From contig NC_043006.1 in assembly GCF_006345805.1 (NCBI RefSeq), positions 73,656,001-73,720,000 of the forward strand: a stretch of DNA of 64,000 bases. Direction: 5' to 3'. The notes under the pieces are model-generated. The model worked only from the letters and a program-made list of their open reading frames with translations, searched no databases and was not told where the DNA came from. The position numbers were made by a program, and so were the translations under genes. This document shows positions 3,926 through 49,015 of the stretch, piece by piece; position 1 is the stretch's first letter, and the number at the start of each line of letters is the position of its first letter. This DNA comes from Octopus sinensis (Eukaryota).

Positions 3926-4975
3926 CTTTTACTTGTTTCGGACAATTGATTGCAGTCATGCTGGGGCGCCGTCTTGAAGGGTGTTAGTCGAACAAATCGA
4001 CCCCAAGGACTTGATTTTTTATGCCTATGAGTCTCTTTTGCCGAACCGCTAGGTTACGGGAGACATAAATATACCAACACCGGTTGTAAAGCAGTGGTGA
4101 AGAACAAACACAGACACGCACATATAGATATGCGCGCACGCACATACACGCACAAACATACACATATGTGTAAAGGATATGAAAAGATTTCGTCAGGAAG
4201 ACCCAAATTTATAAGTAGGCGTTCTGGGTGCTCACATACGTGCGGTACCAGAATTCCAGTTTGAACAGCAGTTGAAATTGTGGTTTTTGCCGTATACACA
4301 CACATAGCCCCCACTCCACGTATATACGACGGACTTTGTCCACCAAATCCACACATATATACGACGGACTTTGTCACAAGGCATTGTTCAGCCCGAGCCT
4401 ATAGAAGACACTTGGCCAAGGCGCCACGCAGTGGGACTGAACGCCGAACGGTACTATCTTGCCCCCATCAAAATATTGGGTTATCTCCCCACCCTAAAAT
4501 AAAATTGTTTAACCCTCAATAAAACAAAAAAAACCCTGATAAATTAATAAACATGAAAGGTGAAGAGATAAAACATCTTATTGAATCTGATATTTTTATA
4601 ACAAATCATGCAAAACTGAAAAAAATTAATAAACATGAAAGCGAAAAGATTAAACAGCTTATCGAATCTGATAATGTTTTTATATCAAATCTTACAAAAC
4701 AAAATAAGTTAATAAACATGAAACCTGAAACAATTAAACATCTTATTGAATCTAATAACATTTTTATAACAAATCATGCCATGCCTCATGGGGAGGCCAA
4801 ACGTCAACAATGTGTTGAAGTATTGAATTAAAACGATCGACCCCTTTTAATTCAATCTCGACGTTTTAGTGGGGAGATAACCCAATTTTTTAGTGGGAAT
4901 TTTTTAATAGGGGTGAGATAACCCAAAAGTAACCGCCGAATCATGTGGTTGGGAAGCAAGCTTCTTACAACACAT
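3926..4975 (-). mobile_element. SINE family 1 copy interrupted by a DNA-transposon-like insert (4450-4933)
   Basis: The SINE breaks at gggactgaacgccgaac and resumes at cgccgaatcatgtggttgggaagcaagc. Confidence 0.75.
4450..4933. mobile_element. Non-autonomous DNA element (MITE-like) with a 7-8 bp TSD, subterminal inverted repeats and an internal 3x ~82-bp repeat
   Basis: TSD cgccgaac/cgccgaat at 4442-4449 and 4934-4941. ttgggttatctc lies near the left end and its reverse complement gagataacccaa occurs twice near the right end. Repeat units start at 4542, 4624 and 4707. Confidence 0.6.
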
Positions 4976-8384: not shown

Positions 8385-8950
8385 TTATAGGCACAAGGCC
8401 TGAAATTTTGGGAGCGGAAGTTAGTCAATTATATGGACCCCAATGCTCAATTAGTATTTATATTATCGACCACGAAAGGGTTGAAAAGCGAAGTCGACCT
8501 TGTCGGAATTTGAACGCAGATCGTGATAGATGAAATGCCACTAAGCAATTTTCTCAGCGTGCTAACGATTCTGCCAGCAAGTAATCTTTTCCACTCTAGG
8601 CACAAGTCTCGAAATCTTGGGGGAGGGCGCTAGTCGATTTGATAGACCCCAGTACACAACTGGTACTTAATTTATCGACCCCGAAAGGATGAAAGGCAAA
8701 GTCGACCTCGGCGGAATTTGAACTCAGAACGTAACGGCAGTCAAAATACCTATTTCTTTATTACCCACAAGGGGCTAAACATAGAGGGGACAAAGAAGGA
8801 CAGACAAACGGACTAAGTCGATTACATCGACCCCAGTGCGTAACTGGTACTTATTTAATCGACACAAAAAGGATAAAAGGTAAAGTCGACCTCGGTGGAA
8901 TTTGAACTCAGAACGTAATGACAGACGTTTCTGCCATCTCCCTCCTTAAT
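8385..8950 (-). mobile_element. Cluster of SINE family 2 copies, including a tail-B copy joined into a tail-A head at 8750|8751
   Basis: Repeated gtcgacctcggcggaatttgaactcagaacg cores, with the junction ...aaaatacc|tatttctttattacccacaagggg. Confidence 0.85.
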
Positions 8951-13752: not shown

Positions 13753-13802
13753 TTATTATTATTATTATTGGTAGTCGTAGTAGTAGTAGTAGTAGTAGTA
13801 TA

Positions 13803-14170
13803 GGCACAGGAGTGGCTGTGTGGTAAGTAGCTTGTTTACCAACCACATGGTTCCGGTTTCAGTCCCACTGCGTGGCACCTTGGGCAAGTGTCTTCTACTA
13901 TAGCCTCGGTCCGACCAAAGCCTTGTGAGTGGATTTGGTAGATGGAAACTGAAAGAAGCCCATTGTATATATGTATATATATGTGTGTGTGTCTGTTTTT
14001 GTCTCCCTCCCAACATCACTTGACAACCGATGCTTGTGTGTTTACGTCCCCGTCACTTAGCGGTTCGGCAAATAAGTACTAGGCTTACAAAGAATAAGTC
14101 CTGGGGTCGATTTGCTCGACTAAAGGTGGTGCTCCAGCATGGCCGCTGTCAAATTACTGAAACAAATAAA
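13803..14170 (+). mobile_element. SINE family 1, full length
   Basis: Consensus match from head to tail. Confidence 0.9.
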
Positions 14171-14234
14171 GTAGTAATAGCAACAGCAATAGTATTAGTA
14201 GTAGTGGTAGTAGTAGTAGTAGTAGCAGCAGCAG

Positions 14235-14912: not shown

Positions 14913-15262
14913 TCTCTGGAGATTGAGTCTAATTCAAATGTTATTAAAGAACACCCATTAGGCCTGCCTCAAACGAGGAAACAAAAGGTGTTGTGCACAA
15001 GTGTTGTTTGTTTCTCTTTTTAAACGTTATGGTGTAGTTTAATGAAGATTTGACTGCTATTTTTAGCAGGTTGAGAGAACATGTAAAAAAGTGGGTCTCG
15101 AGCGGGTGCTTGAGGGTCCATATAATGGCCCTTGAGGATCCATATAAGAATTTATTGTTAAAATTTAAATGCAATAAACTGGTTATACCCCAAAAATGCA
15201 CAAAATGTTTTGACAATCTTTTTTATACACAGGCGCAGGAGAGGCGGTAAGTAGCTTGCTTA

Positions 15263-17774
15263 TCTCATTGCGCATGTGCGAGTCAGTGTTGTGTTTGGCA
15301 CTGAAGCGGTGAGATATGCTTTTGAAGCCGTCTCGAATTGAAAGATTTTGAAGCTCCATTGTAAGGTAGGATTCTGGTTTTTTGGGTCCAGTGGTAATTT
15401 TTGTTGAGAATTTTTTTTCTACAGACAGGAAGTCCTACTGGATTCAGAATTCTGGTTCTTGCTTAATTGTGAGAATTTTTTGTTTCGAGGTGTATTCATC
15501 TTCCTAGTTAGCGGTTTATGTTGAGTGAATATTTTTCTCACTTAATTATGAGAATTGTTGCTTGGAGGAGTATTGTGCTTACGAAAAATTTGTTCATTTT
15601 GAAGAATTTTAAAATAATTGTGAGAACTGCTGTTTGGAGGAGTGTCTTTGCCTCCGAAGATTGAACAATTTTTCTTCCGCTTTTATTGAAGACGTGTATC
15701 TGGTCGACGTCACGGTGAGTGGGTTTGGTTTTTCTGAGCTGGGTAGAATTATTGTCTTATTTTTATTACGGTATATTTTACCCTGCCCTGGTGCATTTTC
15801 GCTAACTCTTGGCGGTGAATTTGTTGCTTGTTTAGCAAGCAAAGTGTGTGTGGCTTGTTGCCGGTGAGCTTGTTTGAACAGCCCGAGAAGCAAACCGGAA
15901 TTATTTGATGTAAATTGTTGTTTTTCTACAGTGGAGAAAAACTGAAGGAGAATTTTTGTTGTTTTCAAACCAACTTAGAGGTTTTGATTATTACGGATTT
16001 GAAGAAGAGATTAAATTTTTTTTTGCTTAGTTACAAGCAAAGAACTGGATTTTACCATCAAATTGAGAGCTGCAAAGGAGCCGAGATCGAATAGAGCCGG
16101 AATACCTTTGTGGCCTGAATTTTTTTTCTGTCTGGAACTATATATTTTTATTTACTCCTTGTGAACTGATGTTTTTCCTTTTTCTTGTATGAACTATTTT
16201 TGGTATGAACTATTATTTTCATTTCTTCTGCCTTTATTGAACAGTTTTCTCTATTTTTCCTGTGTTTAGAATTTTTGTTTGTTGTTTATTTTATGTGGGC
16301 ATTTTAATATGAAGGAAAATAAGGCCACCGCTTTGGAGTAGGAGATTGTCCCACCCAAGCAGTGGCTTGAAAACCATGAGAGAAGGAGGGTGGTACTACG
16401 GACCTATTCTAGGTCGCCTGACGCCATCACCCCCTTCGACAAGAGTATCATTGATAAAGAGCTGGCAAAATGTTGGCCAGCAAAAATTACTTTGTGTCCA
16501 GGGGTGTGGTTGCTATTTGACACCCCTGAGATAGCTTGCATTGCGGAAAGTCAACACCTAGAAGGGGATGAGATTTTGTTCCTCCCCACTTATTGTGGGA
16601 AGAAAATAATGAGGGCTTGGGTATGTGGGATGCCGCCCAGAATTCGGTATGAATTGATAGAACAGTTCATTCGTAGAGGTCGGGGCGGTAGCGGAACCAA
16701 GCTCCTCGGTGTCAGGGTGGAGGCCGCGACCGATCGGACAGGGTCAAAAGCAGTTTTGATCTTTTGGACCCAGTCGGCCGGAGGCCTAGTATTCCCGGAA
16801 TTTTTTGGTAATGGCCGGTGATTCTTGAGGGTGGCTCCCCCGAAGTGTCACCTGTGTCTAGAACCAGGCCACATCAAAAAGAACTGCCCCCAGGGCCGAG
16901 GTAAGGCCCTGGAGCAGAGAAAAAAAGAAAAGGTACTCTCCGCCCCCACCCCATTGGAGGGGGAGACTGAGGAAGTAGTGGAGGCGGTTGCCTCCCCGAA
17001 AAGGAAAAGAAAGGCGAGCAACAATGGTTGCTCACCAAAAGACATACAAGTTGCGGGAGAGAAGGCAGACCTCACGGATAAGCCGATAGAGGTCCTGACC
17101 TCCGCAAGCCCAAAGAAGAGAAATAAAAGAAGTAAAAAGAAAAAAATGGGAGACGGTCGGCGGATGTTGATGTGCCGCCGTCAGATCCCAATGATCTGCC
17201 GATGGGATGTGTGCCACCGGCAGAAAAGATTCCGTCAGTGGAAATTGTGCCACTGAGGAAACAGTGGAAATTGTGCAGGCTGAGGCCCCTCCCCGTGACG
17301 AAGAGGTGGAACTCGTCATTTTCTATCACAAGGAGGGGCTGTCGAGGGATTCTTGAACAGACTTCTCGACTGACAACGTTACGACTCGGTCTGCATTGAC
17401 TGTCCAAGTTGGCCTCCGCAGGTGGCTGCGGAGGTCATAACAGAAAAAGATCTTTTTGAGGTCTTGGTGACCTTTAGAAAAGAAGAATTTACTTTTCTTC
17501 CGGACTCCGACGTGCCGATGCAGGCTTTCCTGCAGGCGGCAGGGAACTTATGCAGGGGCTCGGATGAGAAAGAGGAAGATTAAGAAAAATTTTGTAATTT
17601 TGGTGAATTTTTTGTGTAAAATTGAATAAAAGTAATTTTGAGTGGTAATCGGCCAGCGGGCGCCGGTGCTCCTTCCATTTTTGTTCATCATTATCATTCT
17701 CATCTCATTAATGTTTTTGGCCAGCTCGCGGCTACTCATCTGTGTACGGCTTTCCTGGCCAATTTTATGAATAA
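15263..17774 (+). mobile_element. Non-autonomous L1/Tx1-type retroelement carrying only ORF1; ~1-kb 5' UTR; 14-bp TSD
   Basis: TSD aagtagcttgctta/aagtggcttgctta (13/14) and AATAAA at the 3' junction. A gag-like ORF1 remnant is present; no endonuclease or RT sequence lies between ORF1 and the 3' end. Confidence 0.8.
16309..17583 (+). pseudogene. ORF1p (gag-like nucleic-acid-binding protein) of an L1/Tx1-type element, disrupted
   Basis: ATG at 16309: MKENKATALE*EIVPP...VVLRTYSRS...VWLLFDTPE...GR*...PPKCHLCLEPGHIKKNCP. CX2CX4HX4C zinc knuckle at 16846-16887, then a basic low-complexity tract and a frameshift. Probable end ...GSDEKEED* at 17583. Confidence 0.8.
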
Positions 17775-18186
17775 AAGTGGCTTGCTTACGAACCACATGG
17801 TTTTGGGTTCAGTCCCACTGCGTGGCACTTTGGGCAAGTGTCTTCTACTATAGCCTCGGGCCGACCAAAGCTTTGTGAGTGGATTTGCTACACGAAAACT
17901 GAAAGAAGCTCGTCGTATGTATCTATATATATATATATATATATGTGTATGTGTTGGTGTGTCTGTGTTTGTCCCCCCCCCAACATCTCTTGACAACCGC
18001 TGCTGGTGTGTTTATGTCCCCGTAACTTACCGGTCGGCAAAAGAGACCGATAGAATAAGTACTAGGCATCCAAAGAATAAGACCTGGGGTCGATTTGCTC
18101 GACTAAAGGCGGTGCTCCAGCATGGCCACAGTAAAATGACTGAAACAAGTAAAAGAGTAAAAATGTAGTTCCTAATAATAATTATA

Positions 18187-18334
18187 AAGCTATCTCAGGG
18201 GTGTCAAATAGCAACCACACCGTTGCATACCTGACACCCCTGGACACAAAATAATTTTTTGCTGGCCAACATTTTGCCAGCTCTTTATCAATGATACTCT
18301 TGTCGAAGGGGGTGATGGCGTCAAGCGACCTAGA
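18187..18334 (-). mobile_element. Inverted 148-bp fragment of the same ORF1 family
   Basis: Reverse complement matches 16408-16537 closely, with 18 extra nt (RSLDAITPFDKSIIDKELAKCWPAKNYFVSRGVRYATVWLLFDTPEIA). Confidence 0.9.
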
Positions 18335-18339
18335 CTTTT

Positions 18340-18415
18340 TAAATATCGAATGTCTATGAAGATTCATCCGAGTAAAATAGAGGGTCCATAGGCAAAAAAT
18401 GGTTGAAAAACACTG
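18340..18415 (-). mobile_element. hAT/Charlie-like MITE end fragment
   Basis: The minus strand begins cagtgtttttcaaccatttttt, a Charlie-type TIR. Confidence 0.5.
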
Positions 18416-18574
18416 ATGTAAAGTTTTTGTTTGCTGTTCTCATGGGAATAAATAGTCATTACTTCCGGTCTGTCCAGCAGTGGCGCCTTCCGACTGGTTA
18501 AAATTAGATAATTTTAAATGCTTGTGACTCTCTTATTATTTACTTCATAGCCAGGACCTTGCGTGGGTGGAAGC

Positions 18575-19016
18575 AAAAAAGAGAGAAGAGAGGGAATAGG
18601 AACAAGAAGGGAAAGAATTCAAAGAGAGGAACGGCGAAGACAACTATAACCTCGCAGTTGCTGCAGCGACCGGAGAAGAACAAGACGAAGAAGTAAGAGA
18701 AGAGGAGGAGGAGACGGAAAAAAAGAAAAAGACGAGAAGGAGATGGAGGAGGGTAAGGGGAAGAAGGAGGTGGAGAGGAAGAAGAAAAAGGAGGAAGAGT
18801 AGAAGGAGGAGACGGAGGAGAATGAGAAGAAAAAGAAGTAGGAAGAGGAGACGGAGAAGAAGAAAAAAGATGGAGATGGAGGAGGGTAAGGGGAAGGAGG
18901 AGAAGAAAAAGGAGGAGTAGGAGGAGACGGAGGAGGAGGAGAAGAAAAAGGAGTAGTAGGAGACGGAGAAGAAAAAAACGAAGGAGGAGGAGGAGTAGAA
19001 GGAGGCGGTGGAGGAG

Positions 19017-19076
<60 letters not shown>

Positions 19077-19080
19077 ATAT
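18575..19080. repeat. Purine-rich (GAA/GGA) low-complexity tract followed by (CA)n(TA)n
   Basis: Degenerate gaagaagaaaaaggaggag units. These explain ORFs 18540-19180. Confidence 0.9.
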
Positions 19081-19084
19081 ATGT

Positions 19085-19310
19085 GGAGGCGCGTAGCTTA
19101 GTGGTTAAGGTGTTGAACTCATGATCGTAAGGTTGTGGTTTCGATTCCTGGACCGGGCGTTGCGTTGTGTTCTTGAGCAAAACACTTCATTTTTACGTTG
19201 CTCCAGTCTACTCAGCTGGCAAAAATGAGTAATCCTGCGACGGACCGGCATTCCGTCCAGATGGAACCGGGAAACTGGCCCTTATGAGCCCGGCATGGCT
19301 CGAGAAGGAT
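19085..19310 (+). mobile_element. SINE family 3
   Basis: ggaggcgcgtagcttagtggttaaggtgttg...ggtttcgattcctggaccggg...gttcttgagcaaaacacttc. Confidence 0.85.
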
Positions 19311-19323
19311 CATTTTATGTATA

Positions 19324-19836
19324 TCTATATATATAAAACTGTAGTTGTGTGAGTGTATGTCCCCTTCGATTTAGATTCCTAACTACTCCCACATTTTGCG
19401 GTGCAGTTTAACCAAATTCGGGTATCTTATAGTCGTGATTCATATCGAGCCCGTCTGAGTATTAGCGCGCGTCTACGATGAGTCTACGATTTTAAAAATA
19501 ATTTAACATCATTTTTTATTCCATTTTAATGCATAATTTTTCGTGTGTCGATGGCGGCGGAGTTGGCGTCCATGGTCACACCTGCACCTGTTTGCTTCTC
19601 CCCCTTCTTCCCTCTTTCGTGAAGCTGTGGGGAAGGGAGTGTAAGGAAATCAACGTCGTAAAGCGTTGTCAAGGAGACCAGCGTTCTTTTAGAACAACGA
19701 CTTCATGGCTTGAAGACACCCAAACAGAAATGGCTAAGAAAGCCCGAATTGGCATCTATAAGGGAAGTAACTCTCTAAAAATGCTTATATAGTTATTTCC
19801 CTTACAAACCCGAGCAACGCCGGGCGATACTGCTAG
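19324..19836 (+). mobile_element. Non-autonomous Helitron, complete
   Basis: 5' A|TCTATATATATAAAAC. The 3' hairpin cccgagcaacgccggg is followed by ...tgCTAG|T, giving the A/T insertion site with no TSD. Confidence 0.8.
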
Positions 19837-20091
19837 TAAATATATAAAATATATATAGAAAAATTATATATATTTATATGTATATATTACGTGTAACAAC
19901 GGGCGGATGTATGGTCACGTATAGCAAACTGTTTGCAAATATTTAGTGTGGTAAACAGATGTGAATAACACGTGCATATATGTATGTGTGCACACATACA
20001 CACACATACATATACATTCGTATATACATATCTATGCTTATGCATCTAAATGTTACTAAGTACACACGTGTTCATATATGTGTGTGTGTGT

Positions 20092-20999
20092 GTGTGGTAA
20101 GTAGCTTGCTTACCAGCCTCGTGGTTCCGGGTTCAGTCCCACTGCGTTGCACAAGTGTCTTGTACTGTAGCCACGGGCCGATCAAAGCCTTGTGAGTGGA
20201 TTTGGTTGACGGAAACTGAAAGAAGCCCGTCGTATACATACATATATATATATATGTGTGTGTGTGTGTGTACATGTTTGTGTGTCTGTGTTTGTCCCCC
20301 AACATCGCTTGACAACCGATACTAGTGTGTTTACGTCCCGTAAATTAGCGGTTCGGCAAAATAGACTGATAGAACGAATACTAGGCTTACATAAAATAAA
20401 TCGTGGGGTCGATTTGTTCGATGAAAGGCGGTGCTCCAGCATGGTTGCAGTCAAATGACTGAAACAAGTAAAAGAGTATATATATGCACACACACACCTG
20501 TATATATTTGCTAATGCTTTTCTGTATATATACACAAGTGTAAATGTTTTAACAAATAAACTGCACTTCGTGTTTGAAGTTCCGATGAAGCTATAAGGTG
20601 ATACTCATGAACTCAAGTATGAGTGCATTGCACCTTACAGCAGAAACAGCTATAAGTTAATGGAATTCGTAGCATAATTGTTTATTTCCTTTGTCATTCC
20701 ATGCTCTTATTACCGCTTTCTACTCGATTGACGTTTCATACTGAAGGATTTCTCTTTTACTTGTTTCAGTCATTTGACTGTGGCCATGCTGGAGCACCGC
20801 CTTTAATCGAGCAACTCGACCCCGGCACTTATTCTTTTGTAAGCCCAGTACTTATTCTATCGGTCTATTTTGCCGAACCGCTAAGTAATGGGGACATAAA
20901 CACACCAGCATCGGTTGTCAAGCAATGCTAGGGGGACAAACACAGACACACAAACATACATGCACAGACACACAAACATATATATATATGCCCGTCGTA

Positions 21000-21055
<56 letters not shown>

Positions 21056-21693
21056 CATATATACGACGGGCTTCTTTCAGTTTCCGTCTACCAAATCCAC
21101 TCACAAGGCTTTGGTCGGCCCGAGGCTATAGTAGAAGACACTTGCCCAAGGTGCCACGCAATAGGACTGAACCCGGAACCATGTGGTTGGTAAACAAGCT
21201 ACTTACCACACAGCCACTCCTGCGCCTATGTGTATATTGAGTTATTAACATCAAAATGCGAAATATATTCTTTTATTCTGTTATTTGTTTCAGTCATTTG
21301 AGTACGGCCATGATGCAGCACCGCCTTCAGTCGAACAAATCGACCCCAGAACTTATTCTTTGAAAGCCTAGTACTTATTTCTATCGATGTCTTTGTCGAA
21401 CCGCTAAGTTACGGGGACGTATACATACCAACATCCATTGTCAAGCGATAGTGGCGGGGGGGGGCGACAAACACAGACGCACAAACATACACACAGGCGC
21501 GTGCGTGCACACACACATACATATACGATAGGCTTCTTTCAGTTTCCGTCTACCAAATCCACTGATAAGGCTTTGGTCTGTCTGTCTGAAGCTATAGTAG
21601 AATACATATACCCAAGGCGCCACGCAGTGGAAGTGAACCCGGAACGATGTGGTTGGTAAGGAAGCCACTTACCACACAGCCACTCCTGCACCT
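20092..21693. mobile_element. Three SINE family 1 copies (20092-20476 +, 20753-21228 -, 21267-21693 -)
   Basis: Each matches the family-1 consensus. Confidence 0.85.
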
Positions 21694-21711
21694 ATATATA
21701 CATACATATGC

Positions 21712-21761
<50 letters not shown>

Positions 21762-22503
21762 CAGATAAACCTACTGATGCATGTACGTGCGTAAACATGC
21801 TGTCTGTATGGTCACGTTTTTGCACACACGCATATGCATCTGCAGATACGTGTGTATACATACACACATGTATATGCACACATTCCCATACGTGTTTGTG
21901 CACTGCGATATAGTCACATGCACAATACACACGACACACGCCTACTAGCATCCATTAACACGTCCTCACTTAGGAATATGCTTCTACGTAAAATTACACA
22001 TTAATTCACGCCTAAACATTCCGTTGCGTACAAGAATGTGCATGCTCCTAAAATGTAGCGAACTCTTTGCAAGTTTATGGAGTGTTATATACGTGTTGTT
22101 AAGGGATTTATATTACAAAAGTGCAGAGTTATAAAAATGTGAAAAAACATCGTTCCGTAAATGTTGAAAGCGTTTATAAAATTTGTGGAAAAAATTCGCT
22201 TCGCAATCTGATAGTTACAGGTTCAATTCCTCTGGCACCTTCTGTTATGACCTCTGGCCAACCAAACCATTGTGAGAAGATTTGGATCTATTCCATCTCA
22301 ATCACAGATTTTTTAATTAATTTCTTTTTAACTAAACAGTTTGAAACTTCGAATACTGGTAGAATTTCTCACGTAGAACACGGTTTACTCTCTCTCATTT
22401 TACTCTTTTACTTATTTATTTTATTATAAATGCAAAACAATACCACAGAGGAATCGACGCAAGCTTAAAAAAATAAACCGCGATAGGTGAACCGCGATAT
22501 GCG

Positions 22504-22790
22504 GTCGCAGAAATTGTCTGACATCCATGACTGTGTTGTCCTGCTTGTGTGGCATGATGCAGAGTCCTGTTGCCAGGCATAGGGTAGGGTCTTCTAGCAG
22601 CCACCTTGTTGACCGACGGTAGCGTTACCTCCTCCAAGTACTTGATGTAGGCCTCGGTGTTAAATTTGAGGCCATGTGGGAAGATGGAGGTATAGCATCA
22701 CCATCACTAGTGATCATTCCAGACACCATAATGTTGACTGGATGTTTGATTTTTCTCACTCTTGGAACATGTTTTGGGGATTCAGATTGA
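22504..22790 (-). mobile_element. Tc1/mariner-superfamily transposase fragment (maT/DD37D-like), frameshifted
   Basis: KHPVNIMVSGMITSDGDAIP / PHGLKFNTEAYIKYLEEVTLP...RRPY / WQQDSASCHTSRTTQSWMSDNFCD. WQQDSAxCH contains the second catalytic Asp motif. Confidence 0.85.
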
Positions 22791-23829
22791 CACCCAACAC
22801 TTTGAAATGTTCGTATTTCCGGTGCGAATGTCAAGCAGTACAGCATGTCCTTTTCAAATTTTTAGCAAAGTGAATAGCGTCATGGTGCTGATATTCTCAC
22901 AGAGGGTGCCCAACAGACCCTGCTATACTGTGTAGTCGACAAAAACAAAAATAATGTTCATGTACAAAATTAAAAATATAAAATGGCGACAATTTACCTA
23001 TCGTACCTTGTATATATATATATGTGTGTGTGTGTGTATGCATGCATGTGTGTGTGTATGTGTGTGCGTATGTGTGAGTGTGTGTGTGCTTGTGTTCGCT
23101 CTTCCTCTGCTTGATAACCGCTGATGGTTTGTTAACGTTTCCGTAACTTAGCGGCTCAGCAAAGAAGATTGATATTATAACTTACACAGCTAGAAACATA
23201 AGTACTGGGGTCGATTTTTTCGCCAAAACTCTTGAAGGTAGTGCCCCCGTATGGCCACAATCGAATAACTCTAATAAGGTTAAAGAAAATAAAAACTGAA
23301 AAGATTATATGTACGTGTTTCAATTGCATCCTATGTATGTGTGGCAGCAATTATTTCTTAAATAAATATAACAACTATAAATACTCTTTTTTGTTCATGG
23401 TAGAGCGTCCCTTTAATATCATAAATGTACATATGAATCTACAAACGAATTTTAACAAGAAAATTGATATGCATATTAAGACGAATAAGACTATATTTGA
23501 AGCTACTACACTGACATACACAAGGTTATTTAACAACCAAGGAACATGTGTGGATGTTTAAAGTTTGCGCGTAAGGAATTTGTAAATGTAACCGTTTTAA
23601 TTTGAAACACACATTATATATTCTCGTTTACACCTTTCGGTTATTTTTTCATCTTTTTTCATCTACATTCGTCTATGTGTAGGCATGTGTATATGTTTAT
23701 ATGTCTGGGTGTATATGAATGTACTTGTGTTATTTTTTCTGGCGTTTACGTGTTTCACTTATAATTACCAAAAATTAACACTCGCATGTACATACATTGC
23801 TGTACATCACCACATGAACGGTTGTTGAA

Positions 23830-23860
<31 letters not shown>

Positions 23861-24194
23861 TATATAAGATCCAGGGATCGAGGTGTTGGAAGAAAGTTAC
23901 CTTCAAGCAATCCATAGTAAATATAAAAAGCAATTTTCAAGGACAATAGTGGTTTCTTGAGACGGAACGTTGTGTATTTTTTCGTAACATTTCATTTAAT
24001 CAATATATATTGGGCCTGAAGACTAACCTGCAGTATACACCTCACTTGGATATTTACCGGTTTTCAGCTTCCGTTCGCTATGAAGTATATATAACCCGGA
24101 TCTTATCTACTCTATTCCGTAACCCTTGTATATATGTATATATATAGTAGAAATATGTTACAAAAAGAAAATATAAAATGCACGTGGAAATGTA

Positions 24195-24539
24195 AGGGTA
24201 AAATATGAAAAATCAACGAAAATGCCCATTGCAAATAAAAAAAGGCTATTTATGACAGGTAACGACAAATGTATACATTTAGATTGACTGAGGTAGTAAT
24301 ACGAGTCATAAAAGTCATTATTATGAGATAATTCAAACGATGAATAGCTTTGCATAAACCATGGTCCGTTTTGTTCTCTTACTTTGTTATCATCTTTTAA
24401 TCATCTCATAATAATGACTTTTATGACTCGTATTACTACCTCAGTCAATCTAAATGTATATATTTGTCGTTACTTGTCATAAATAGCCTTTTTTTTTATT
24501 TGCAATGTACATTTTCGTTGAGTTTTCATAGTTTACCCC
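24195..24539. mobile_element. Fold-back element/MITE with ~140-bp inverted arms and TA flanks
   Basis: Arms 24195-24333 and 24399-24539 are near-identical reverse complements. Confidence 0.75.
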
Positions 24540-25195
24540 TATAAAAATATATATGTATATCTCTGGGGCGACATACATCGAGTAAACATTAACTACCTTC
24601 TTTTGCCGAACAGCTAAGTTACAGGGACGTAAACACACCACCATCAGTTGTCAAGAGATGTTGGGGGGGGGGGAGAAACACAGACACAAACGTATACACA
24701 CACATACATATATATACATAAACATAATACAAGTAATGAGAGAGAGTTCACATGTAGTCACTCTAACGCTAGATATAGATGCACGAAGGGAATCCACCAC
24801 TAAAGAAATGTTCTCAAGAATTAATTCAACACGCCAAGAATGTAAGCGAGCAGGAAATATGAAAAATAACGAAAAAATAGATTAACTCTATACAATTGTT
24901 TCACCGTTAATAGATTGTGTAATTATACTTACATAATCATTTTTGGATCTTCAGTAGAGTATATAAAAAAATATAATTTGCTGAGTCGAACGCCAACATC
25001 CACACGAAGCCGAATAAAGGCGAATGGCACAGCCGATTATATCTGCAGTTACGTTCAAATATCCTCATTCTCGCGCGTTGAAAAAACTGGATGTAAATAG
25101 TACTCCAGTAATTTACTGCCGGTTTGAGAACATATTAATTTATAATTAAAATCACAATAAGGGTGAAAAAAATTGAATATTAATTAATTACATCA

Positions 25196-25269
25196 ATTTA
25201 ATTCTTGAGAACATTTCTTGAATTAATTCTTGAGAACATTTCTTGAATTAATTCTTGAGAACATTTCTT
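25196..25269. repeat. 25-bp tandem repeat x3
   Basis: The unit attcttgagaacatttcttgaatta starts at 25201, 25226 and 25251. Confidence 0.95.
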
Positions 25270-26422
25270 TAGTGGTGGATTCTTTCGGGCTCTGTTCATA
25301 ACGTTTGATGTATTTAAAAACCAGGATAAAAGTCTGTAAGAAAGCATGAGAAAGAAACGAGAAGAAAAAAACGCATAGAAAGTTGATGTAAAAAGTGGAA
25401 CGAGAAGAATGAAAATTATGGTTTCTACAGTCAAAGAGGACGAAAATCCTGGCTTCTTTATATTGTTTTTCCTTCTTATCGTTCCATTTTTTACATCAAC
25501 CTTCTTCGCGTTCTTTTCTCCTCGTTTTTTTTTTCTCATGTTGTGCCATAGACCAGCGTCCTGGTTTTTAAACACATCTGCCATTATGAACTGAGTCAGA
25601 AAGATTTCTTGGAGATACACGGTATACTATAAAAATCTGCCAACTTAATGTACCTTAACGCATGAAACTATCAGTAGCCCTTTTGTAATTGTATATATAT
25701 TCAATGATATTTATCTCTCACTAAATGGAGCACTTTTTTTGTTGATTCTATCTATAACGGAACTTTAAACTATATACAAAGCATTTTGACTTCACACGAT
25801 AGAATAGTCCAACTTAATTGATAATGAAGGAATGATCCGAATCACAGAAATTCGGTAGCTGCGTTTGTGGGGAAAAGTATGGAAACGGTTTCATGTGGTA
25901 ATACCAGGATCAATTTGGTGCTATCAATGTGAGCTTGGATGCACTTATGAAACTTTGAGAGTGCTTGTTTGGGAAGTATGAGTTTGTGATTCAGAGATCT
26001 CTGGGGTGACATACATCGAGTAATCCTTTACTTTCTTTCATTTCACGTCCCTGTTTACTCCGTAGAGGCAATGGTTGCCGACAAACACGCATACATATAT
26101 ACATGTATATGAGAGAGAGAGAGAGAGAGAGAGAAAAGGGAGAGAAAGAAAGAAAAGAGGGAGAGAGAGAGAGAAAGAGAGCGGATGGTAAAAAGCAGAA
26201 AAGCGTAATTTTACCCATGGTTCGAGAAGAATTAAATTATGAATCATGGGAAAATGTACGCTTTTATGCAACTTTACTATTCTAGATATAAGGCTCTCAT
26301 CAACGGTGGTTGATGAGAGTCGAATCTGCAAAAACACGCTGGTATTTATTGCTTTGTAATAAGGTATTGGAGTTTAACGATGTGTTAATTAAATACCGAA
26401 GTTACATATTAGGACACGTATA

Positions 26423-26623
26423 CAGTAATGCCTCAACTATCGCGGGTGTTACACTCACGCGATAGGTGAAAATCCGCGAAGTAGTTACAGTACTGTACTA
26501 TACACTTTTTAAAAATTATTTCTATAATTTGTATATATTTATTTTATTGTAAATGCAAAACAACACCATGGAGGAATCGACGTAAGCTTAAAAAATAAAC
26601 CGCGATATGGCGAGGGATTACTA
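26423..26623. mobile_element. pogo/Tigger-like MITE with both ends
   Basis: TA|cagtaatgcctcaactatcgcg ... cgcgatatggcgagggattacta|TA. Confidence 0.75.
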
Positions 26624-26842
26624 TATATCAGTGTATCAAAACATATATAACGTGTTAACACTTAGGTATGCAAATTAGTAGCCCTACTTTTCTGTAGCTA
26701 CTGTAAATGTTGGGTATATAAATAGACTGGTGGCCTGTGTTCCTAGGATTGGACAAACTGATGTAGTCGTCTCTGATGAGAATCCAGTAAGATTAAGGTT
26801 GTTCATAATTTTTTCGATCTACGTAGAATCAACAAAATTAGC

Positions 26843-27352
26843 CCGTTTGTCTCTTCTGTGTTTAGCCCCTTGTGGGTAGTAAAGAAATAGGTATTTCGTT
26901 TGTCGTTACAGGAAGCACAAGGCCTCAAATTTGGGATAAGGGATTAAGTCGATTATATCGACCCCAGTGTGTGACTGGTCCTTAATTTTTGCACAGAGAC
27001 AGCAGGTTCGGGGATGGGATTAATTCGATTACATCGACCCCATTTCGCAACTGGTGCTTATTTTGTAGATCCCCTAAGGCTAAAAGATAAAGTTGAGCTC
27101 CGGGGAGCGATAGACGATATTATTTCTTTACTACCTACAAGGGGCTAAACATAGAGGGGGCAAACAAGGACAGACAAAGGGATTAAGTCGATTACATCGA
27201 CCCCAGTGCGTAACTGGTACTTAATTTATCGACCCCGAAAGGATGAAAGGCAAAGTCGACCTCGGCTGAATTTGAACTCAGAACGCAGCAGCGGATGAAA
27301 TGCCACGAAGCATTTGGCCGGCGTGCTAATGGTTCTGTCAGCTCGCTGCCTT
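26843..27352. mobile_element. Rearranged SINE family 2 cluster
   Basis: A tail-B end on + at 26843-26889, a tail-A fragment, an inverted copy of the 28190-28326 SINE, then a full tail-B copy on -. Confidence 0.75.
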
Positions 27353-28133
27353 ATGTTCGTAATGTAATATGTTTGTATAACTGAAAAATTCAAGTGGTAA
27401 AGTTTTTGGCGTAGCGCGAATAAGCAATAAAGTCAGGGGGAGTGAAAATTGAAGAAAGAGTTATCTATCCATATGGCTTGATTACGATTACAACCGTTTC
27501 GTGACGTACTTATGTAATATCAATTTCAGTATGCTAAACTTTGCATTGATGTGTATACTCAGTCCTATACAAGAAAGTCGTATATTTACAAATGAATGCA
27601 AAAAATGAATGCTAAGTCATCAGAACATCATAATTTTGTACGCACACACAAATATATATATATATGTATGTATTTAAACACATACATTTGGGAAGTATAA
27701 TCATTTCCGACATGTTTAAAATAAGTGAGAAAACACACTTAAGTATATCTACGCACATACAGCAATTTTTATAAAATGGATTTTTCTTTGTTGAAAGTGA
27801 TAATTTGGTGTTATTCGCTGTTAAAAAAGAACAGTGAAACCATTCGAATATTATCACAAATATTGCCTGTTGAATTCACAGCCAATTAAAATAAAAGAAA
27901 CATTAACAGATTGATGAAAATAGATTCTTGAAGAGTTCCATGCGAGTTTTTCATACGAACGAGTTGCACATTTCATAAAAATAACACCAAAATGCATGCT
28001 GCTTATCGGAAAATCATTATTGTGTGTTGTCATAAGCACAAGTGCTAAGAGTTCGAGCGTAATAATTGTAATACATAATGTCTTTATGCAGAGGTTTTGT
28101 TTGTCGCACCCAAGTCTCAATATACTTTTAAAG

Positions 28134-28334
28134 ATTTAAGGCGGTGATCGGGCAGAACTTTTTGCGCGCTGGGCGAACTGTTTAGCGGTATATCGTCTAT
28201 CGCTCCCCGGAGCTCAACTTTATCTTTTAGCCTTTGGGGATCTATAAAATAAGTACCAGATGCGAAATGGGGTCGATGTAATTGACTTAATCCCATCCCC
28301 GAAACTGCTGGCCCTGTGCAAAAATTTGAAACTA
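28134..28334 (+). mobile_element. SINE family 2 (tail A) with a 15-bp TSD
   Basis: TSD aatatacttttaaag at 28119-28133 and 28335-28349. Confidence 0.85.
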
Positions 28335-29178
28335 AATATACTTTTAAAGTATAGCAGTATGGCATTTGTGGACACCGGGTGTGTATGTGTGAGTGCGAGA
28401 GAGAGAGAGAGAGAGAGAGTAAGTAGATATGTGTGAGAGTTTAGTGTGATTGCCTACGTGCATGTAAAGAATATGCGCATGCGCTTCACAGTACAAATCT
28501 TGCTTCACAAAAACCGAACTATTTACAACTGAGAATGCTGAATAAAATGCTCTTACAAACATGTGCAACCATATATGTATGTGTATGAGTGTGTATATAT
28601 GTGCGTAAATGTGTGTAAGCACACACGAAACGCGCACATATACAGACACACATACACGCGCATAATTTATCTTATGGCCATTAAAGTTGCACGGGCATTT
28701 CAGACGCACTCTCTTTTCAGCAGCGCATAGTCACAGGAAATGTTTTTAATGCATTAAAGAAAAGCTTATGCAATAGCCATCTTCATATATAGGATCCAGG
28801 GTTTATCTTTTGGGACGTTTATTGGGAAAAGTTGCGTCAGAATTGTAAAACTCAGCACCGCTTATCAAATCAACGTGGTTTGTTTATATGAAAATATTAC
28901 TATGAAATTATAGTTCTTAAATCTGATGGGAAGAAGCGTGTGGATACGTTGGTGTAATGGTAACACACTTGTCATGACAACATAGAGGTGTGGGTTCGGG
29001 TCCACGCACACGGAAAACGCGTTTTTTCCCGTCGAGGGCTGTCATGCTCCAATATTAGACTATTAGTCAATATCAGTTATTGCTTATAAGTTTTAAGCTT
29101 ATAAAAGATTAATATTATTTACAAAATTATAAAATTCGGCACCGCTTATCAAATCATCACAGTTTATATATAGTATAT

Positions 29179-29453
29179 AGACGCAGAGGTGGCTGTGTGG
29201 TAAGTAGCTTGCTTACCAACCACATGGTTCTGGTTTCAGTCCCACTGCGTGGCACTTTGAGCAAGTGTTTTCTACTATAGCCTCGGGCCGACCAAAGCCT
29301 TGTGTTTATGTCCCCGTAATTTAACGGTTTGGCAAAAGAGACCGATAGAATAAGTACTAGGCTTACAAAGAATAAGTCCTGGGGTCGATTTGCTCGACTA
29401 AAGGCGGTGCTCCAGCATGGCCGCAGTCAAATGACTGAAGCAAGCAAAAGAGA
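29179..29453 (+). mobile_element. SINE family 1 with an internal deletion of the microsatellite linker
   Basis: ...ccaaagccttgtg joins directly to tttatgtccccgtaa. Confidence 0.85.
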
Positions 29454-30239
29454 GTATATATGTATTTATATCGAATTTCAACGGGACTGATAATAAGTCC
29501 CGTCAAGGGCTTTTAAATTTTAAGTAGCACACAATTTGAATTAAACTGTTCTGATCCATGCATATATATTATTATATGGCGGCGGACTCAACATGGTTGC
29601 AGTACAATGAATGAAACATGTAGACAACAGCAGCAAGAACACGGAAAAGAAAAAACTAACGTGACTTTCTAAATGAAGTTCTATATGATATTTGTCCTGC
29701 ATCAAGCTAGTAAGATACTCCTTTGTCACCCTTGCGTTCAGAAATATGATGTTCCAGTGATTGGAAACCATTTTTGTTCATTATTTTCAGTGATTGGAAA
29801 CCCTGTTGTTCATTATTTTCGAGAAAAAAAGTCTCTTATAATGCTTCAGTCATTGGACTGCAGCCATTCTGGTGGGCGGCATTGAAGAGTTTAGTAGCTC
29901 AAATCGACCCTAGGGTTTATTTTAAAACTTGACACTTATTCTATCGTTCACTAATGCTGAACTAATGCTGGACAAACTATCATCTGTTTCTAGGGAGAAA
30001 TACATATACAAAGACACACTCATACAAACACATATACACACAGCAAACACACACTTACTTCAGTTTCTGTCTACCAAATTCACTCACAAGGCTTTGGACG
30101 CCACTGTTTTATAGCAGATAAAACTTGTATAAAGTGTCGTGCAGTGGGACTGTACCTAAGACGAAATGCTTGGGATGCAAGCTTCTTATCCATACAGTCA
30201 CGCCACGCTAGAAATTAGTTTCAAATTACGGAAGAAGGT

Positions 30240-30600
30240 AAGAAAGTTCGGTAGTGTAGGGGGTTAAGTCGTTTAAATCATCCCTAGTGCTCAACGGGTA
30301 CTTATTTTATCGACCCTGAAAGGATGAAGGGCAATATTACTTCTGTGGAATTTGAACTCAGAACGTAACGACAGACGAAATACCTATTTCTTTACTACCC
30401 ACAAGGGGCTAAACACAGAAGGGACAAACAAGGACAGACAAACGGATTAAGTCGATTATATCGACCCCAGTGCGTAACAGGCACTTATTTAATCGACCCC
30501 GAAACTGGTACTTATTTAATCGACCCCAAAAGGATGAAAGGCAAAATTTGTCTTCTCTATGTTTAGCTCCACGTGGGCAATAAAGAAATAAGAAATGTCG
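30240..30600 (-). mobile_element. SINE family 2 cluster with a tail-B junction at 30384|30385
   Basis: acagacgaaatacc|tatttctttactacccacaagggg. Confidence 0.85.
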
Positions 30601-31170
30601 ATATATTAAATTAGCTAAATTAACTCGTGCCTTCTTACAGAACAGTATTAATACAAAAAAGAAAGCGAAAATAGAGGGAAAAAAGCTGAAAGAAAGGAAA
30701 AGAATAGGTAGAAAGAGGAAAAGTGAGAAACAGCAAAAAGATACAATCTAAATCTGATTCCGCAAACGAAAGCAAACTTGATGAGGTGAACTAAAATATG
30801 TATAATATAATAAGACATATAAATAAAAACGAGAGAGTTTGGTTGTTGCTGTTAATAACGCAGTATCCATCTTGTGATTAATCTGAATTGGAGAATTGAT
30901 TTCGATTTGAACTATTGACCAGCTATTTGTTATTCGAGGGATGGAAACATACTTGGAATGGATTTGGCTTTTATTAAGTTTTACACATCTTTGATCAATC
31001 ATTGGGTCCTCATGTACATACAAACATAGATAATTAATACGTAACACTCATACATTTATATGCACGCGTATAGACACGCATATGTATGTATGTTTATAAG
31101 TAGGTATGTATATATATATGTGTGTGTATGTTTATATATGTATATATATATATGCATATGTATACACACA

Positions 31171-31265
<95 letters not shown>

Positions 31266-31789
31266 ACATACATATGTGTGTGTGTACACACACAGGCTGT
31301 ATGGTAAAAAGTTAGTTTCCCAACTAATCGTATTGTACGGGATCCAAGGAGGGTTTTAGATCAAATACATTGATTTCCAGCATAACCACAAGTAGCCTCA
31401 TGCACATAGTTGTATATCTAGACATGCTCATATATATTTAAATGATAAACTTCTGGAAAGTTTTACAGATTTTTACAGTTCCTATGAGGCATTGGATCTG
31501 TAGACTTCGAATTAGCTTCCTCTTATCTGGTTTTTGTTCGAAGTTGAAGACTATCATTTTGTACCAATGTAACAATTTTTTTAAAACTCTGTGAATGTTG
31601 TCCCGTGTAAACCGAATCAAAATTCCATCGGAGTGGAGGTTACTCGCTGGTATAAATACCAGCGCAAGCCTGGTCTTAATCCTATGGATTATGTTTCCCA
31701 AAATAGCAAAATCTGGATATGTAGTTTACCCAAAGTACATTTCTGTATTTCTCTACATCCTGAGTTTATGTTCTATCGTAATTATTTTT

Positions 31790-32713
31790 TACTTTTGCCG
31801 AACTTCTAAATTACGGTGACGTAAACACACCACCATTGGTTGTCAAGCGATGTTGGCGGGACAAACACAGATACACAAACATACACACACACACATACAT
31901 ATATGTGTGTGTGTATATAAATATATATATATATATACCTATATGTGACGAACTTCTTTCAGTTTCCGTCTACCAAATCCACTCACAAGGCTTTAGTCGG
32001 CCCGAGACTATAGTAGAAGACACTTGCCCAAGGTGCCACGCAGTGGGACTGAATTCGGAACCATGTGGTTCGTAAGCAAGCTTCTTTATTTCAATAAATT
32101 TGCCATGTAGGCATAATACAGAGGGGACAAACATGGACAGGCAAACATAGAATGGTGAAGTAGCTTAAAACGTTGTTATGAATCGATTAAAAATATGTAA
32201 AAGGTGAATAATTAAGAATAAAACAAAATAAAATACATTGCGTTATGCAATGTGACACCAAAAGAAAGCCATCCGACATCAGGGTAGGGCCTTTGCTTTT
32301 CTTCCAGGGTCCCACTTACTTGGTGCCAATCGCTCCCAGCTTTTTTTTACCACAGGCTTCCATCTCTTCTCGAATTTCTCACGTGAGAAGTACTGCTTCT
32401 CGAGCCTGATCTTGCTTCTGAGTTGGTAGCTAAAAAAGTTGACCAACCCCTGGACGGATACAAAGGTACTCGTCACAATCCCTTTCACACGTGTCTTCCT
32501 AAAATGGCTACCACGCAGTAAATCAGGCCTTCCTTTCCCCGCTAAGGGAAGAAAGCGGCTCAATCTCCATAATGGACTCAGCTGATAGCTGTACGCTTCC
32601 CATCGATGACAACAGTTGTTCCGTGAAAGCTATCAATCCCGATAATTCCGGACATTCCACGAATGCGTGCAAGATGGTTTCCCTCTACTTACCACACAGC
32701 CACTCCTACGCCT
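31790..32713 (-). mobile_element. SINE family 1 split by an L1/Tx1-type 3' fragment
   Basis: The head ggcgtaggagtggctgtgtggtaagtag (32713-32685) resumes as aagaagcttgcttacgaaccacatgg at 32086. Confidence 0.85.
32087..32684 (-). mobile_element. 5'-truncated L1/Tx1-type LINE: ORF2 C-terminus plus 3' UTR
   Basis: RETILHAFVECPELSGLIAFTEQLL (end of the ORF2 CCHC knuckle) then ...GLVNFFSYQLRSKIRLEKQYFSREKFEKRW. The 3' UTR ends in gaaataaa. Putative TSD aagtag/aagaag. Confidence 0.85.
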
Positions 32714-41104: not shown

Positions 41105-41512
41105 TCTACTATAGGCACAAGGCCTGAAATTTTTGGAGAGTGGGGCCAGTCGATTAGATCGATTCGACCCAATACGCAATTGGTATTTAATTTATCGACC
41201 CAGAAAGGATGAAGTGCAAAGTCGCTCTCTGCAGAATTTGAACTCAGAACGTAAAGACAGACGAAATGCCCCTAAGCATTTCGCCCAGCGTGCTAACGTT
41301 TCTTATTTCTTTATTGTCCACAAGGAGCTAAACATAGAGGGGACAAACAAGGACATCTACACCAGTGCGTAACTGGTACTTAATTTATCGACCTAGAAAG
41401 GATGAAAGGCAAAGTCGACCTCGGCGGAATTTGAACTCAGAACGTAACGGCAGACGAAATACGGCTACACATTTCGCCTGGCGTGCCAACGGTTCTGCCA
41501 GCTCGCCGCCTT
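41105..41512 (-). mobile_element. SINE family 2: a tail-B copy joined into a tail-A head at ...aacgtttct|
   Basis: cgtgctaacgtttct|tatttctttattgtccacaagg. Confidence 0.85.
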
Positions 41513-42167: not shown

Positions 42168-42267
42168 NNNNNNNNNNNNNNNNNNNNNNNNNNNNNNNNN
42201 NNNNNNNNNNNNNNNNNNNNNNNNNNNNNNNNNNNNNNNNNNNNNNNNNNNNNNNNNNNNNNNNNNN
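42168..42267. other. Assembly gap (100 N)
   Basis: A run of exactly 100 N. Continuity across it is not guaranteed. Confidence 1.
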
Positions 42268-46154: not shown

Positions 46155-46550
46155 TGGCGAGCTGGCAGGACCGTTTACACGCCGGGCGAAATGCTAACCG
46201 GTATTTCGTCTGCCGCTACGTTCTGAGTTCAAATTCCGCCGAGGTCAACTTTGCCTTTCATTCTTTCGGGGTCGATTAAATAAGTACCAGTTACGCACTG
46301 GGGTCAATATAATCGACTTAATCCGTTTGTCTGTTCTTGTTTCTCCTCTCTGTGTTTAGCCCCTTGTGGGTAGTAAAGAAATAGGTATTTCGTCCGTTTT
46401 CACGTTCTAAGTTCAAATTCCGCTGACGTAAATTTTTCCCTTCATCCTTTTGGGGGTCGATAAAATAACTAGCAGTTGAGTACTGGGGTCGATATAATCG
46501 ACTATCCCCCTCACCCCAAATTTCAGGCCTCGTGCCAATGGTAGAAACGA
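46155..46550 (+). mobile_element. SINE family 2: a young tail-B unit inside an old tail-A copy (junction 46383|46384)
   Basis: gtagtaaagaaata|ggtatttcgtccg; the flanking unit is much more diverged. Confidence 0.85.
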
Positions 46551-48204: not shown

Positions 48205-49015
48205 GAAAGCGGTGAGCTGGCAGAAACGTTAGCACACTGGGCGAAATGCTTAGCGGTATTCCGTCTACCGCTACGTTCTGAGTTCAAATTCCGCCGAGGT
48301 CGACTTTGCCTTTCATCCTTTCGGGGTCGATTAAATAAGTACCAGTTACGCACTGGGGTCGATATAATCGACTTAATCCGTTTGTCTGTCTTTGTTTGTC
48401 CTCTCTGTGTTTCGCCCCTTGTGGGTAAGTAAAGAAATATTTATTCGGTCTGTCTTTATGTTCTGAGTTCAAATTCCGCCGTGGTCGACTTTGACTTTCA
48501 TCATTTCAGGGTTGATAAATTAAGTACCAGTTCCGTACTGGAGTCAATGTAATCGATTGCCCCCTCCCCCAAAATTTCGGGCCTTGTTCCTAGAGTAGAA
48601 ATGAATAGTTTACTAAGGAAGGGTTTTTTAGGTTGCGAGCTGGCAGAATCGTTAGCATAACGACGAATTGCTTAGTGATATTTCGTCTTATCTGTGCGTT
48701 CGGAGCTAAATTCCACCGATGTTGACTTTACCTTTTATTCTTTCGGGCTCCGTGAAATTAGTACGAGTCGAGCAATAGTGTCAATGCCATCGACTAGATT
48801 CCTCTCCGCAAAGTTTCAGGCCTTGTGCCTATAGTAGAAAGAAATATTTCACTGGTTTAAGGCGACGATCTGGCAAAACCTTTAGCACGCTGAGCAAAAT
48901 GCTTAGTAGAGTTTCGTCTGAGTCCAAATGCTTGTAGGGGATAATAAATACCAGTCAAACAGAAAGCTAATAGACTAACCTCCATCCTTTAAGACTTCAG
49001 GCCTTGTCTCTACTG
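48205..49015 (+). mobile_element. Head-to-tail chain of SINE family 2 copies (tail-B junction at 48439|48440)
   Basis: Four successive heads or cores on +. Confidence 0.8.

Follow-up and report, generated by a model that had tools for sequence, protein, structure and literature searches.

Within a 64,000-nucleotide stretch of the Octopus sinensis genome (contig NC_043006.1, positions 73,656,001 to 73,720,000; hereafter, the window), which is AT-rich (GC = 37.6%) and rich in repeats, two decayed elements of the long interspersed nuclear element (LINE) type have landed within copies of one family of short interspersed nuclear elements (SINEs), here denoted SINE1. One copy is interrupted by insertion 1 (15263-17774, +), another by insertion 2 (32087-32684, -). 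An earlier note on this DNA had proposed that the pair represents a LINE that targets the SINE head. Here, we analyze the junctions of both insertions along with a related copy from another octopus locus and conclude that, on balance, an octopus lineage of retroelements without long terminal repeats (non-LTR elements), probably L1/Tx1-like, integrates preferentially at a single site in the SINE1 head and in the orientation of the SINE.

The interrupted SINEs and the two insertions

SINE1, an element of ~400 bp, accounts for 10% of the sequence in ~25 fragments, among which 11 heads can be recognised; with a second family, SINE2 (7%), SINEs make up 17% of the window. The SINE1 heads begin at an identical base amid unrelated flanks, as is characteristic of a short, dispersed, multicopy element, and a scan of prokaryote-genome and viral collections, which contain no octopus DNA, gave no match to the SINE1 pattern. 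The head was described in the earlier note as tRNA-derived, a description that retains the backing of older literature and of the box-A-like (TGGCTGTGTGG) and box-B-like (GGTTCAGTCCC) motifs that can be read by eye in the sequence, but not that of the prediction tools: for the SINE1 head, ARAGORN reported 0 tRNA genes and Rfam nothing at gathering thresholds, and a full SINE1 copy searched against Rfam gave no tRNA match at E <= 10. The heads of SINE1 and SINE2 behave alike in this respect, none being called a tRNA by ARAGORN or Rfam in the interval 13780-14200 or across the whole window, despite the box-A-like and box-B-like motifs.

Insertion 1 is preceded by a SINE1 head (15232-15262, +) that comprises positions 1-36 with a 5-nt internal deletion and ends in ...GGTAAGTAGCTTGCTTA. 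The element itself ends in ...TTTTATGAATAA (a terminus that can also be given as ...TTTATGAATAA), and the rest of the SINE1 copy, from position 23 to the end, resumes immediately as AAGTGGCTTGCTTACGAACC... (17775-18165, +). A target-site duplication (TSD) of 14 bp flanks the element (15249-15262, AAGTAGCTTGCTTA, and 17775-17788, AAGTGGCTTGCTTA; 13/14 identical). From its 5' end, insertion 1 consists of an untranslated region (UTR) of ~1 kb with internal repeats (15263-16308), an open reading frame (ORF), ORF1, that is frameshifted and bears a CCHC knuckle (about 16309-17160), a brief segment in another reading frame that is conserved in the related copy from the other octopus locus (...LVIFYHKEG...), and a 3' UTR of ~190 nt. 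An ORF2 body, LTRs and terminal inverted repeats (TIRs) were looked for in insertion 1, and none was found. When ORF1 was compared with Pfam, the CCHC knuckle matched zf-CCHC at E = 0.0015 and 19 bits, under the cut-off of 20.8; beyond this weak match, ORF1 yielded nothing in Pfam and no sequence match in PDB, and its AlphaFold model has a confidence (pLDDT 31.8) too low to use, so that an RRM is not visible from it.

An isolated, internal 148-bp fragment of ORF1 from another copy of this family (18187-18334, -; 86% identity) lies ~20 bp past the 3' end of the interrupted SINE1 copy, in inverted orientation, and keeps the codons RGVRYAT, which insertion 1 has lost by deletion. Lacking a 3' end, this fragment is silent on the choice of target. 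Twin priming was considered as its origin and rejected because the fragment is not contiguous with insertion 1.

Insertion 2, on the opposite strand, is a 5'-truncated LINE with an intact 3' end that retains only the C-terminus of ORF2 and the 3' UTR. It follows a SINE1 head of positions 1-28 (32685-32712, -) that ends in ...GGTAAGTAG, terminates in ...TTATTGAAATA, and is followed by the remainder of the second SINE1 copy, from position 23 onward (31792-32086, -), which resumes as AAGAAGCTTGCTTACGAACC.... The TSD is 6 bp long, with the copies AAGTAG (32685-32690) and AAGAAG (32081-32086). The ORF2 portion (about 32279-32684, -) spans ~135 codons with one frameshift and contains the motif RETILHAFVECPELS...; the pattern E-T-x-x-H...C is readable in insertion 2, and the fragment produced no Pfam match. 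The 3' UTR occupies 32087-32278 (-).

To compare the two insertion sites, we aligned both flanks of each element with nine SINE1 heads of the window that carry no interruption. In either case, the 3' junction lies at SINE1 position 22|23 (GGT|AAGTAGC), the SINE1 sequence on the 3' side of the junction being AAGTAGCTTGC, and both elements lie in the orientation of the SINE. Neither carries a poly(A) tail, and both 3' ends directly abut position 23. The claim that the SINE resumes right after the AATAAA of each element holds as far as this abutment goes; however, the terminal A's of both elements overlap the target AAG by 1-2 nt of microhomology, so the 'AATAAA' is partly derived from the target. 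Both insertions have TSDs, and terminal direct or inverted repeats were found in neither, as expected of LINE-type elements. They have no coding region in common, and over ~200 nt their 3' UTRs are weakly similar (a similarity matched by 7/500 shuffles); the last 60 nt, however, are significantly similar (1/2000 shuffles).

Segmental duplication of a single locus is excluded as the source of the pair, given that the two differ in 5' junction and TSD, have unrelated outer flanks, and sit in SINE copies that are only 90% alike, no nearer to each other than to other copies. The analysis bore out most of the earlier description, namely, the coordinates and junctions of the two insertions in one SINE family, their identical 3' register, the unequal TSDs (14 bp with one mismatch and 6 bp), their origin in separate events, the relatedness of their 3' termini, and the presence of ORF1 in one and the ORF2 C-terminus in the other. 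Two further accounts of the association were tried and rejected: end-to-end template switching as the source of the upstream SINE head, because the head stops in the middle of the SINE rather than at an RNA end, and SINE1 as the LINE's own mobilisation partner, because the 3' tails are unlike.

A third copy and the relatives of the lineage

A single database homologue of the insertion 1 ORF1 was found, the O. sinensis gene LOC115225585 (51% identity). The corresponding 20.8-kb locus (L001), which was fetched by ORF1 protein homology alone, without reference to SINEs, holds an element related to insertion 1 (67% nucleotide identity) whose 5' end aligns base for base with that of insertion 1. 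Directly in front of this 5' end lie positions 1-35 of SINE1 (...GGTAAGTAGCTTGCTT|CCTGTGCATGCG), the sole SINE1 head within the locus. At the two full-length 5' ends, the SINE1 head thus stops at position 36 (insertion 1) and position 35 (L001). About 5 kb upstream of the element, the same locus contains an intact 426-aa ORF with tandem C2H2 zinc fingers (L001:3012-4292), which we assign to the zinc-finger gene families that are expanded in octopus.

When the C-terminus of insertion 2 was used as the query of an exhaustive protein search, 30 relatives were recovered, mostly short fragmentary ORFs from Logan assemblies of an octopod. A word-indexed homologue search with the same query gave no match, a 31-sequence profile retrieved only 3 short-contig proteins, and exact look-up of one window ORF gave no match. 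The two longest relatives, P0003 and P0032, match the Pfam domain zf-RVT (PF13966) at 1e-8 and 7e-9, respectively, and P0003 (contig L008) extends upstream into the reverse transcriptase (RT) motifs ...RQGFPLS... and ...AYADD.... The RT and thumb region of L008 is closer to human L1 ORF2p (4e-13) than to R2 (7e-3) in a PDB comparison set devoid of CR1, RTE, I and Jockey elements. An RT domain was found neither in insertion 1 or insertion 2 nor in the rest of the window. Judging from the zf-RVT and RT matches of the relatives and from the CCHC knuckle of ORF1, it is plausible that the lineage belongs to the L1/Tx1-type LINEs. The repeat annotation of Octopus vulgaris describes L1-Tx1 families as recently active (PMC13282606).

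The 3' ends are resolved in four of the more distant relatives (L001:1-640, L005, L130 and L132), all of which end in ...AAAGAAAT(A), the tail of the SINE2a unit of SINE2, unlike the termini of insertions 1 and 2. The contigs of the other relatives mostly end inside or just past the repeated 3' tail (L006, L009), or else the copy is deleted at its 3' end (L135). A metagenome scan with a degenerate 3'-end pattern produced at least 120 matches, with no octopus DNA among the matches listed, the pattern being too unspecific.

The connection to SINE2 extends to insertion 2, whose 3' tail (32087-32146, -) is homologous to the SINE2a tail (0/2000 shuffles reach the score); SINE2a tails occur in the window at 8751, 27121, 30385, 41304, 46383, 48439, 49047, 51311 and 59624, and the relatives L009 (2130-2172) and L001:1-640 (590-640) end in the SINE2a-like ...AATAAAGAAATA. 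Because the tails of insertion 2, L009 and L001:1-640 are homologous to that of SINE2a, the LINE group of insertion 2 likely mobilises SINE2a as its partner. Such tail sharing between a SINE and a LINE of apparent L1/Tx1 type would be an uncommon pairing.

SINE2 units are also arranged head to tail in arrays of the same orientation, at 8632-8927 (-), 30261-30504 (-), 46156-46503 (+), 48209-48556 (+), 51203-51440 (-) and 59507-59854 (-), as well as at 41148-41510 (-). In six cases, a full SINE2a (positions 1-231, tail ...GTAAAGAAATA) is directly followed by a second type of unit, SINE2b, from position ~49 (GGTATTTCG...), and in one case the unit starts from position 15. The junction between SINE2a and SINE2b lies at another small palindrome, CGAAATGC-N6-GCATTTCG. 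These arrays could be either a fixed dimeric SINE family or the product of repeated insertion into SINE2 heads with 5' junctions resolved by homology. We rejected the 'dimers' as further evidence of head targeting, given that they resemble a fixed composite family and that the junction is not resolvable.

The target hairpin and the case for a site preference

Positions 19-39 of SINE1 form an imperfect palindrome, TGGTAAGT-AGCTT-GCTTACCA, that folds as a hairpin with an 8-bp stem. From the two 3' junctions, we infer a first nick opposite 22|23, in the complementary strand at 5'-CTT|ACC-3', and the two full-length 5' junctions would place the second nick in the SINE strand, at 5'-CTT|AC-3', between positions 35|36 (L001) or 36|37 (insertion 1). 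The nick sites so deduced mirror each other about the centre of the palindrome, which would explain the 13-14-bp TSD of full-length copies and suggests, within a 1-nt ambiguity of the junctions, a single endonuclease specificity that works on both strands.

Both interrupted SINE1 copies carry CTTACGAACC (17786-17792 and 32069-32075) where 7/10 copies have CTTACCAACC. This CTTACG variant, a minority form (3/10 SINE1 copies), lies in the 3' arm of the palindrome, beside the presumed second-strand nick; its presence in both hosts could reflect chance (P about 0.02-0.09), choice of a subfamily or co-mobilised sequence.

These junctions are compatible with a scheme of target-primed integration in which the endonuclease would nick the SINE's complementary strand within the palindrome, at 5'-CTT|ACC-3', opposite GGT|AAG (22|23). 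Once freed, the ...CTT-3' end would anneal to the A's that terminate the element RNA (...AAUAA), thereby priming reverse transcription, so that the element abuts its target without a poly(A) tail. The second strand would be cut at the mirror CTT|AC, 13 nt downstream (35|36), yielding the 13-14-bp TSD of full-length copies, and 5'-truncated copies would join irregularly, as exemplified by the 6-bp TSD of insertion 2. Elements with a common 3' terminus of ~35-60 nt might all be served by one ORF2 protein, and hence share a target; one form within the lineage would possess ORF2, as exemplified by insertion 2, and another would have ORF1 without ORF2, as in insertion 1 and the L001 copy of O. sinensis. 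In its most specific form, which we put forward tentatively, the proposal is that an L1/Tx1-like octopus LINE and its ORF1-only satellite use an endonuclease specific for the hairpin palindrome of this highly abundant SINE, cutting the two strands at mirror CTT|AC sites, with the SINE, itself mobilised by another LINE, serving as a dedicated safe harbour.

Several lines of evidence count for a site preference: first, two independent junctions at 22|23 together with two homologous 5' ends located behind SINE1 heads; second, the combination of TSDs, lack of LTRs and TIRs, 5' truncation, lack of poly(A), related last 60 nt and host copies unrelated beyond family level; and third, the 8-bp-stem hairpin, with nick positions symmetric about its centre. 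A sequence preference of the lineage as such is well supported. The proposal of the earlier note, that a LINE targets the SINE head, is strengthened in regard to the independence of the events, their register, their related termini and the third copy, and weakened by the four relatives that reside elsewhere and by the possibility that the CTTAC(C) motif suffices.

A number of observations weigh against the preference for SINE1. The informative copies of the lineage are found at the SINE1 site in 3/3 cases, a sample of three that cannot prove targeting. The L001 element is broken ~130 bp past ORF1, so that its 3' half and 3' junction are lost and its TSD is uncheckable. The junctions are ambiguous by 1 nt at the 5' side of insertion 1 and by 1-2 nt at both 3' sides, and the homologue searches and contig look-ups did not recover an RT or endonuclease sequence of the lineage itself. 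None of the four more distant relatives with resolved 3' ends (0/4) is flanked by a SINE1 head; the preference, if real, is therefore confined to a sub-lineage rather than clade-wide. Finally, among the 24 CTTACC hexamers in the window (both strands), 15 are in SINE1 heads, 10 of these at the observed site and in the observed orientation, and a preference for the hexamer alone would place 3/3 copies there with P about 0.07.

This last observation underlies the main rival explanation, which we consider unlikely while according it appreciable weight: the endonuclease would need only ~5-6 bp (CTT|AC(C)), and the SINE itself, simply abundant, would go unrecognised. L1-type endonucleases have short, T|A-centred preferences, and SINE1, at ~10% of the DNA and with a hairpin that carries the motif in each strand, supplies most of the usable CTTACC sites; if CTTACC is required, the probability that a second insertion hits the observed site is about 0.4 (10/24 sites). 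The calculation changes with the pentamer CTTAC, which has 108 sites in the window, ~9% of them being the observed one, so that P is about 8e-4 for 3/3 copies. All three copies, moreover, share a single orientation, even though either strand of the hairpin would provide the motif, and none was seen at a CTTACC site outside SINEs, in what is a tiny sample.

Decidedly less probable is the possibility that parts of the SINE travel with the element, by 5' transduction or co-transcription of the upstream head from a master copy residing in SINE1, by 3' transduction of the downstream SINE body, or by amplification of one or two ancestral SINE-LINE composites, in which case the shared position would reflect descent instead of targeting. 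L001 fits this scenario in that it shows only the junction between the head and the element's 5' end, no SINE1 remainder being found within 10 kb; the minority CTTACG in both interrupted SINEs points the same way, and 5' heads derived from the target are known in some Tx1 families (PMC4494074). Carry-over of the SINE head by transduction or co-transcription could account for L001 by itself, but not for insertions 1 and 2, each of which is flanked by both SINE halves and a matching TSD, and whose different 5' junctions still call for no fewer than two separate integration events at 22|23. The SINE bodies, 90% alike, are no closer than random copies, the outer flanks are unrelated, and a master copy in a SINE1 head would itself mean targeting.

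Pure coincidence, whereby AT-preferring LINEs struck the same SINE position and were noticed post hoc in a repeat-rich window (17% SINEs) at a site whose T|AA core resembles generic L1 sites, is unlikely to the point of being very improbable: with ~11 SINE1 heads in 64 kb, the chance of a second insertion at the same SINE1 position and orientation is about 9e-5 under uniform insertion and about 4e-3 if only the 2969 T|AA sites of the window can be used, the independent third copy at another locus contributes a factor similar to that of the second hit, and the nick positions are mirror-symmetric.

Other features of the window were noted as well. A ~500-bp TIR element, resembling a miniature inverted-repeat DNA transposon (4443-4938, -; termini GGTTACTTTTGGGTTATCTC... 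and ...GAGATAACCCAA...), is inserted in another SINE1 copy near position 50, both the site and the class of element being unlike those of the LINE insertions. A CT-rich low-complexity tract of ~500 bp (18540-19030), which adjoins a (TA)n/(TG)n microsatellite, gives rise to long spurious minus-strand ORFs, and an assembly gap of 100 N (42168-42267) is distant from both insertion sites.

Significance and comparison with known systems

Among the classes of transposable elements (TEs) annotated in octopus genomes, LINEs (12.9%) and SINEs (11.6%) are the two largest (PMC13282606). If the preference for the SINE1 site is real, the SINE head would be a new target class for a known kind of target-specific LINE, and the arrangement would amount to three-layer parasitism, in which a LINE lands in a SINE that depends on a different LINE. 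Such insertion would also be a built-in means of SINE inactivation, since it parts the box-A-like from the box-B-like motif, and could help account for the nested repeat clusters of octopus genomes. Target-specific LINEs are natural models for programmable RNA-mediated insertion, and an apurinic/apyrimidinic endonuclease (APE)-type specificity with a simple palindrome would enlarge the few characterised cases. If there is only a hexamer preference, the case serves as a caution that apparent 'TE targeting' can come from motif abundance alone. Our literature search, the coverage of which was incomplete, turned up no description of a LINE that targets a SINE head.

The closest parallels are among the Tx1-group LINEs, classic examples of target-specific elements of the APE type, with described targets that include U2 and U5 snRNA, 5S rRNA, a tRNA-Leu spacer, microsatellites and other transposons (PMC4494074, PMC3706591). 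Tx1L of Xenopus laevis and Tx1-Mar and Tx1-9_AMi of crocodilians insert into transposons, namely, the piggyBac-type Tx1D, Mariner-N4_AMi, Harbinger and LTR elements (PMC4494074). Like the octopus insertions, they occupy a fixed position in a multicopy transposon, with a precise 3' junction and no poly(A); in these systems, non-autonomous elements with shared machinery share a target, as is proposed for the octopus lineage, and some copies carry target-derived 5' sequence. They are APE-type LINEs of the Tx1 group, to which the octopus lineage plausibly belongs; the octopus target, a hairpin in a SINE head, did not turn up among the described Tx1 targets, and its putative specificity is drawn from 3 copies, compared to tens or hundreds. 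Keno (U2 snRNA), Mutsu (5S rRNA), Dewa (the spacer of tRNA-Leu arrays) and Kibi/Koshi (microsatellites) are sequence-specific members of the same group (PMC4494074, PMC3706591). The octopus case resembles these in the use of a multicopy, dispensable target of the RNA polymerase III (Pol III)/snRNA type or repetitive in nature, with a sequence-defined insertion point, but their targets are host genes, spacers and microsatellites, whereas that in octopus is a mobile SINE.

More distant systems share single traits with the octopus elements. R1, an APE-type site-specific LINE of arthropod 28S rDNA, has full-length copies that lack poly(A) and whose TSD is fixed at 14 bp, the two features in which insertion 1 resembles it by description; it belongs to another clade, and its target is a host rRNA gene. 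HAL1 (half-L1) of mammals is an ORF1-only LINE derivative that is mobilised in trans and is not known to have target specificity; insertion 1 and the L001 element resemble it in having ORF1 and no ORF2 body, and insertion 1 could be a member of an ORF1-only family that propagates or a one-off internal deletion. Integration associated with tRNA genes is shown by the Dictyostelium TRE elements and yeast Ty3, which are placed beside genes by Pol III transcription factors, and by the Dada elements, which are DNA transposons; common to all of these and to the octopus lineage would be the use of Pol III-type multicopy units as safe harbours. In octopus, by contrast, the junction falls within the repeat itself, at a DNA motif that is palindromic; this suggests that the endonuclease recognises the site directly, unlike the placement of TRE and Ty3.

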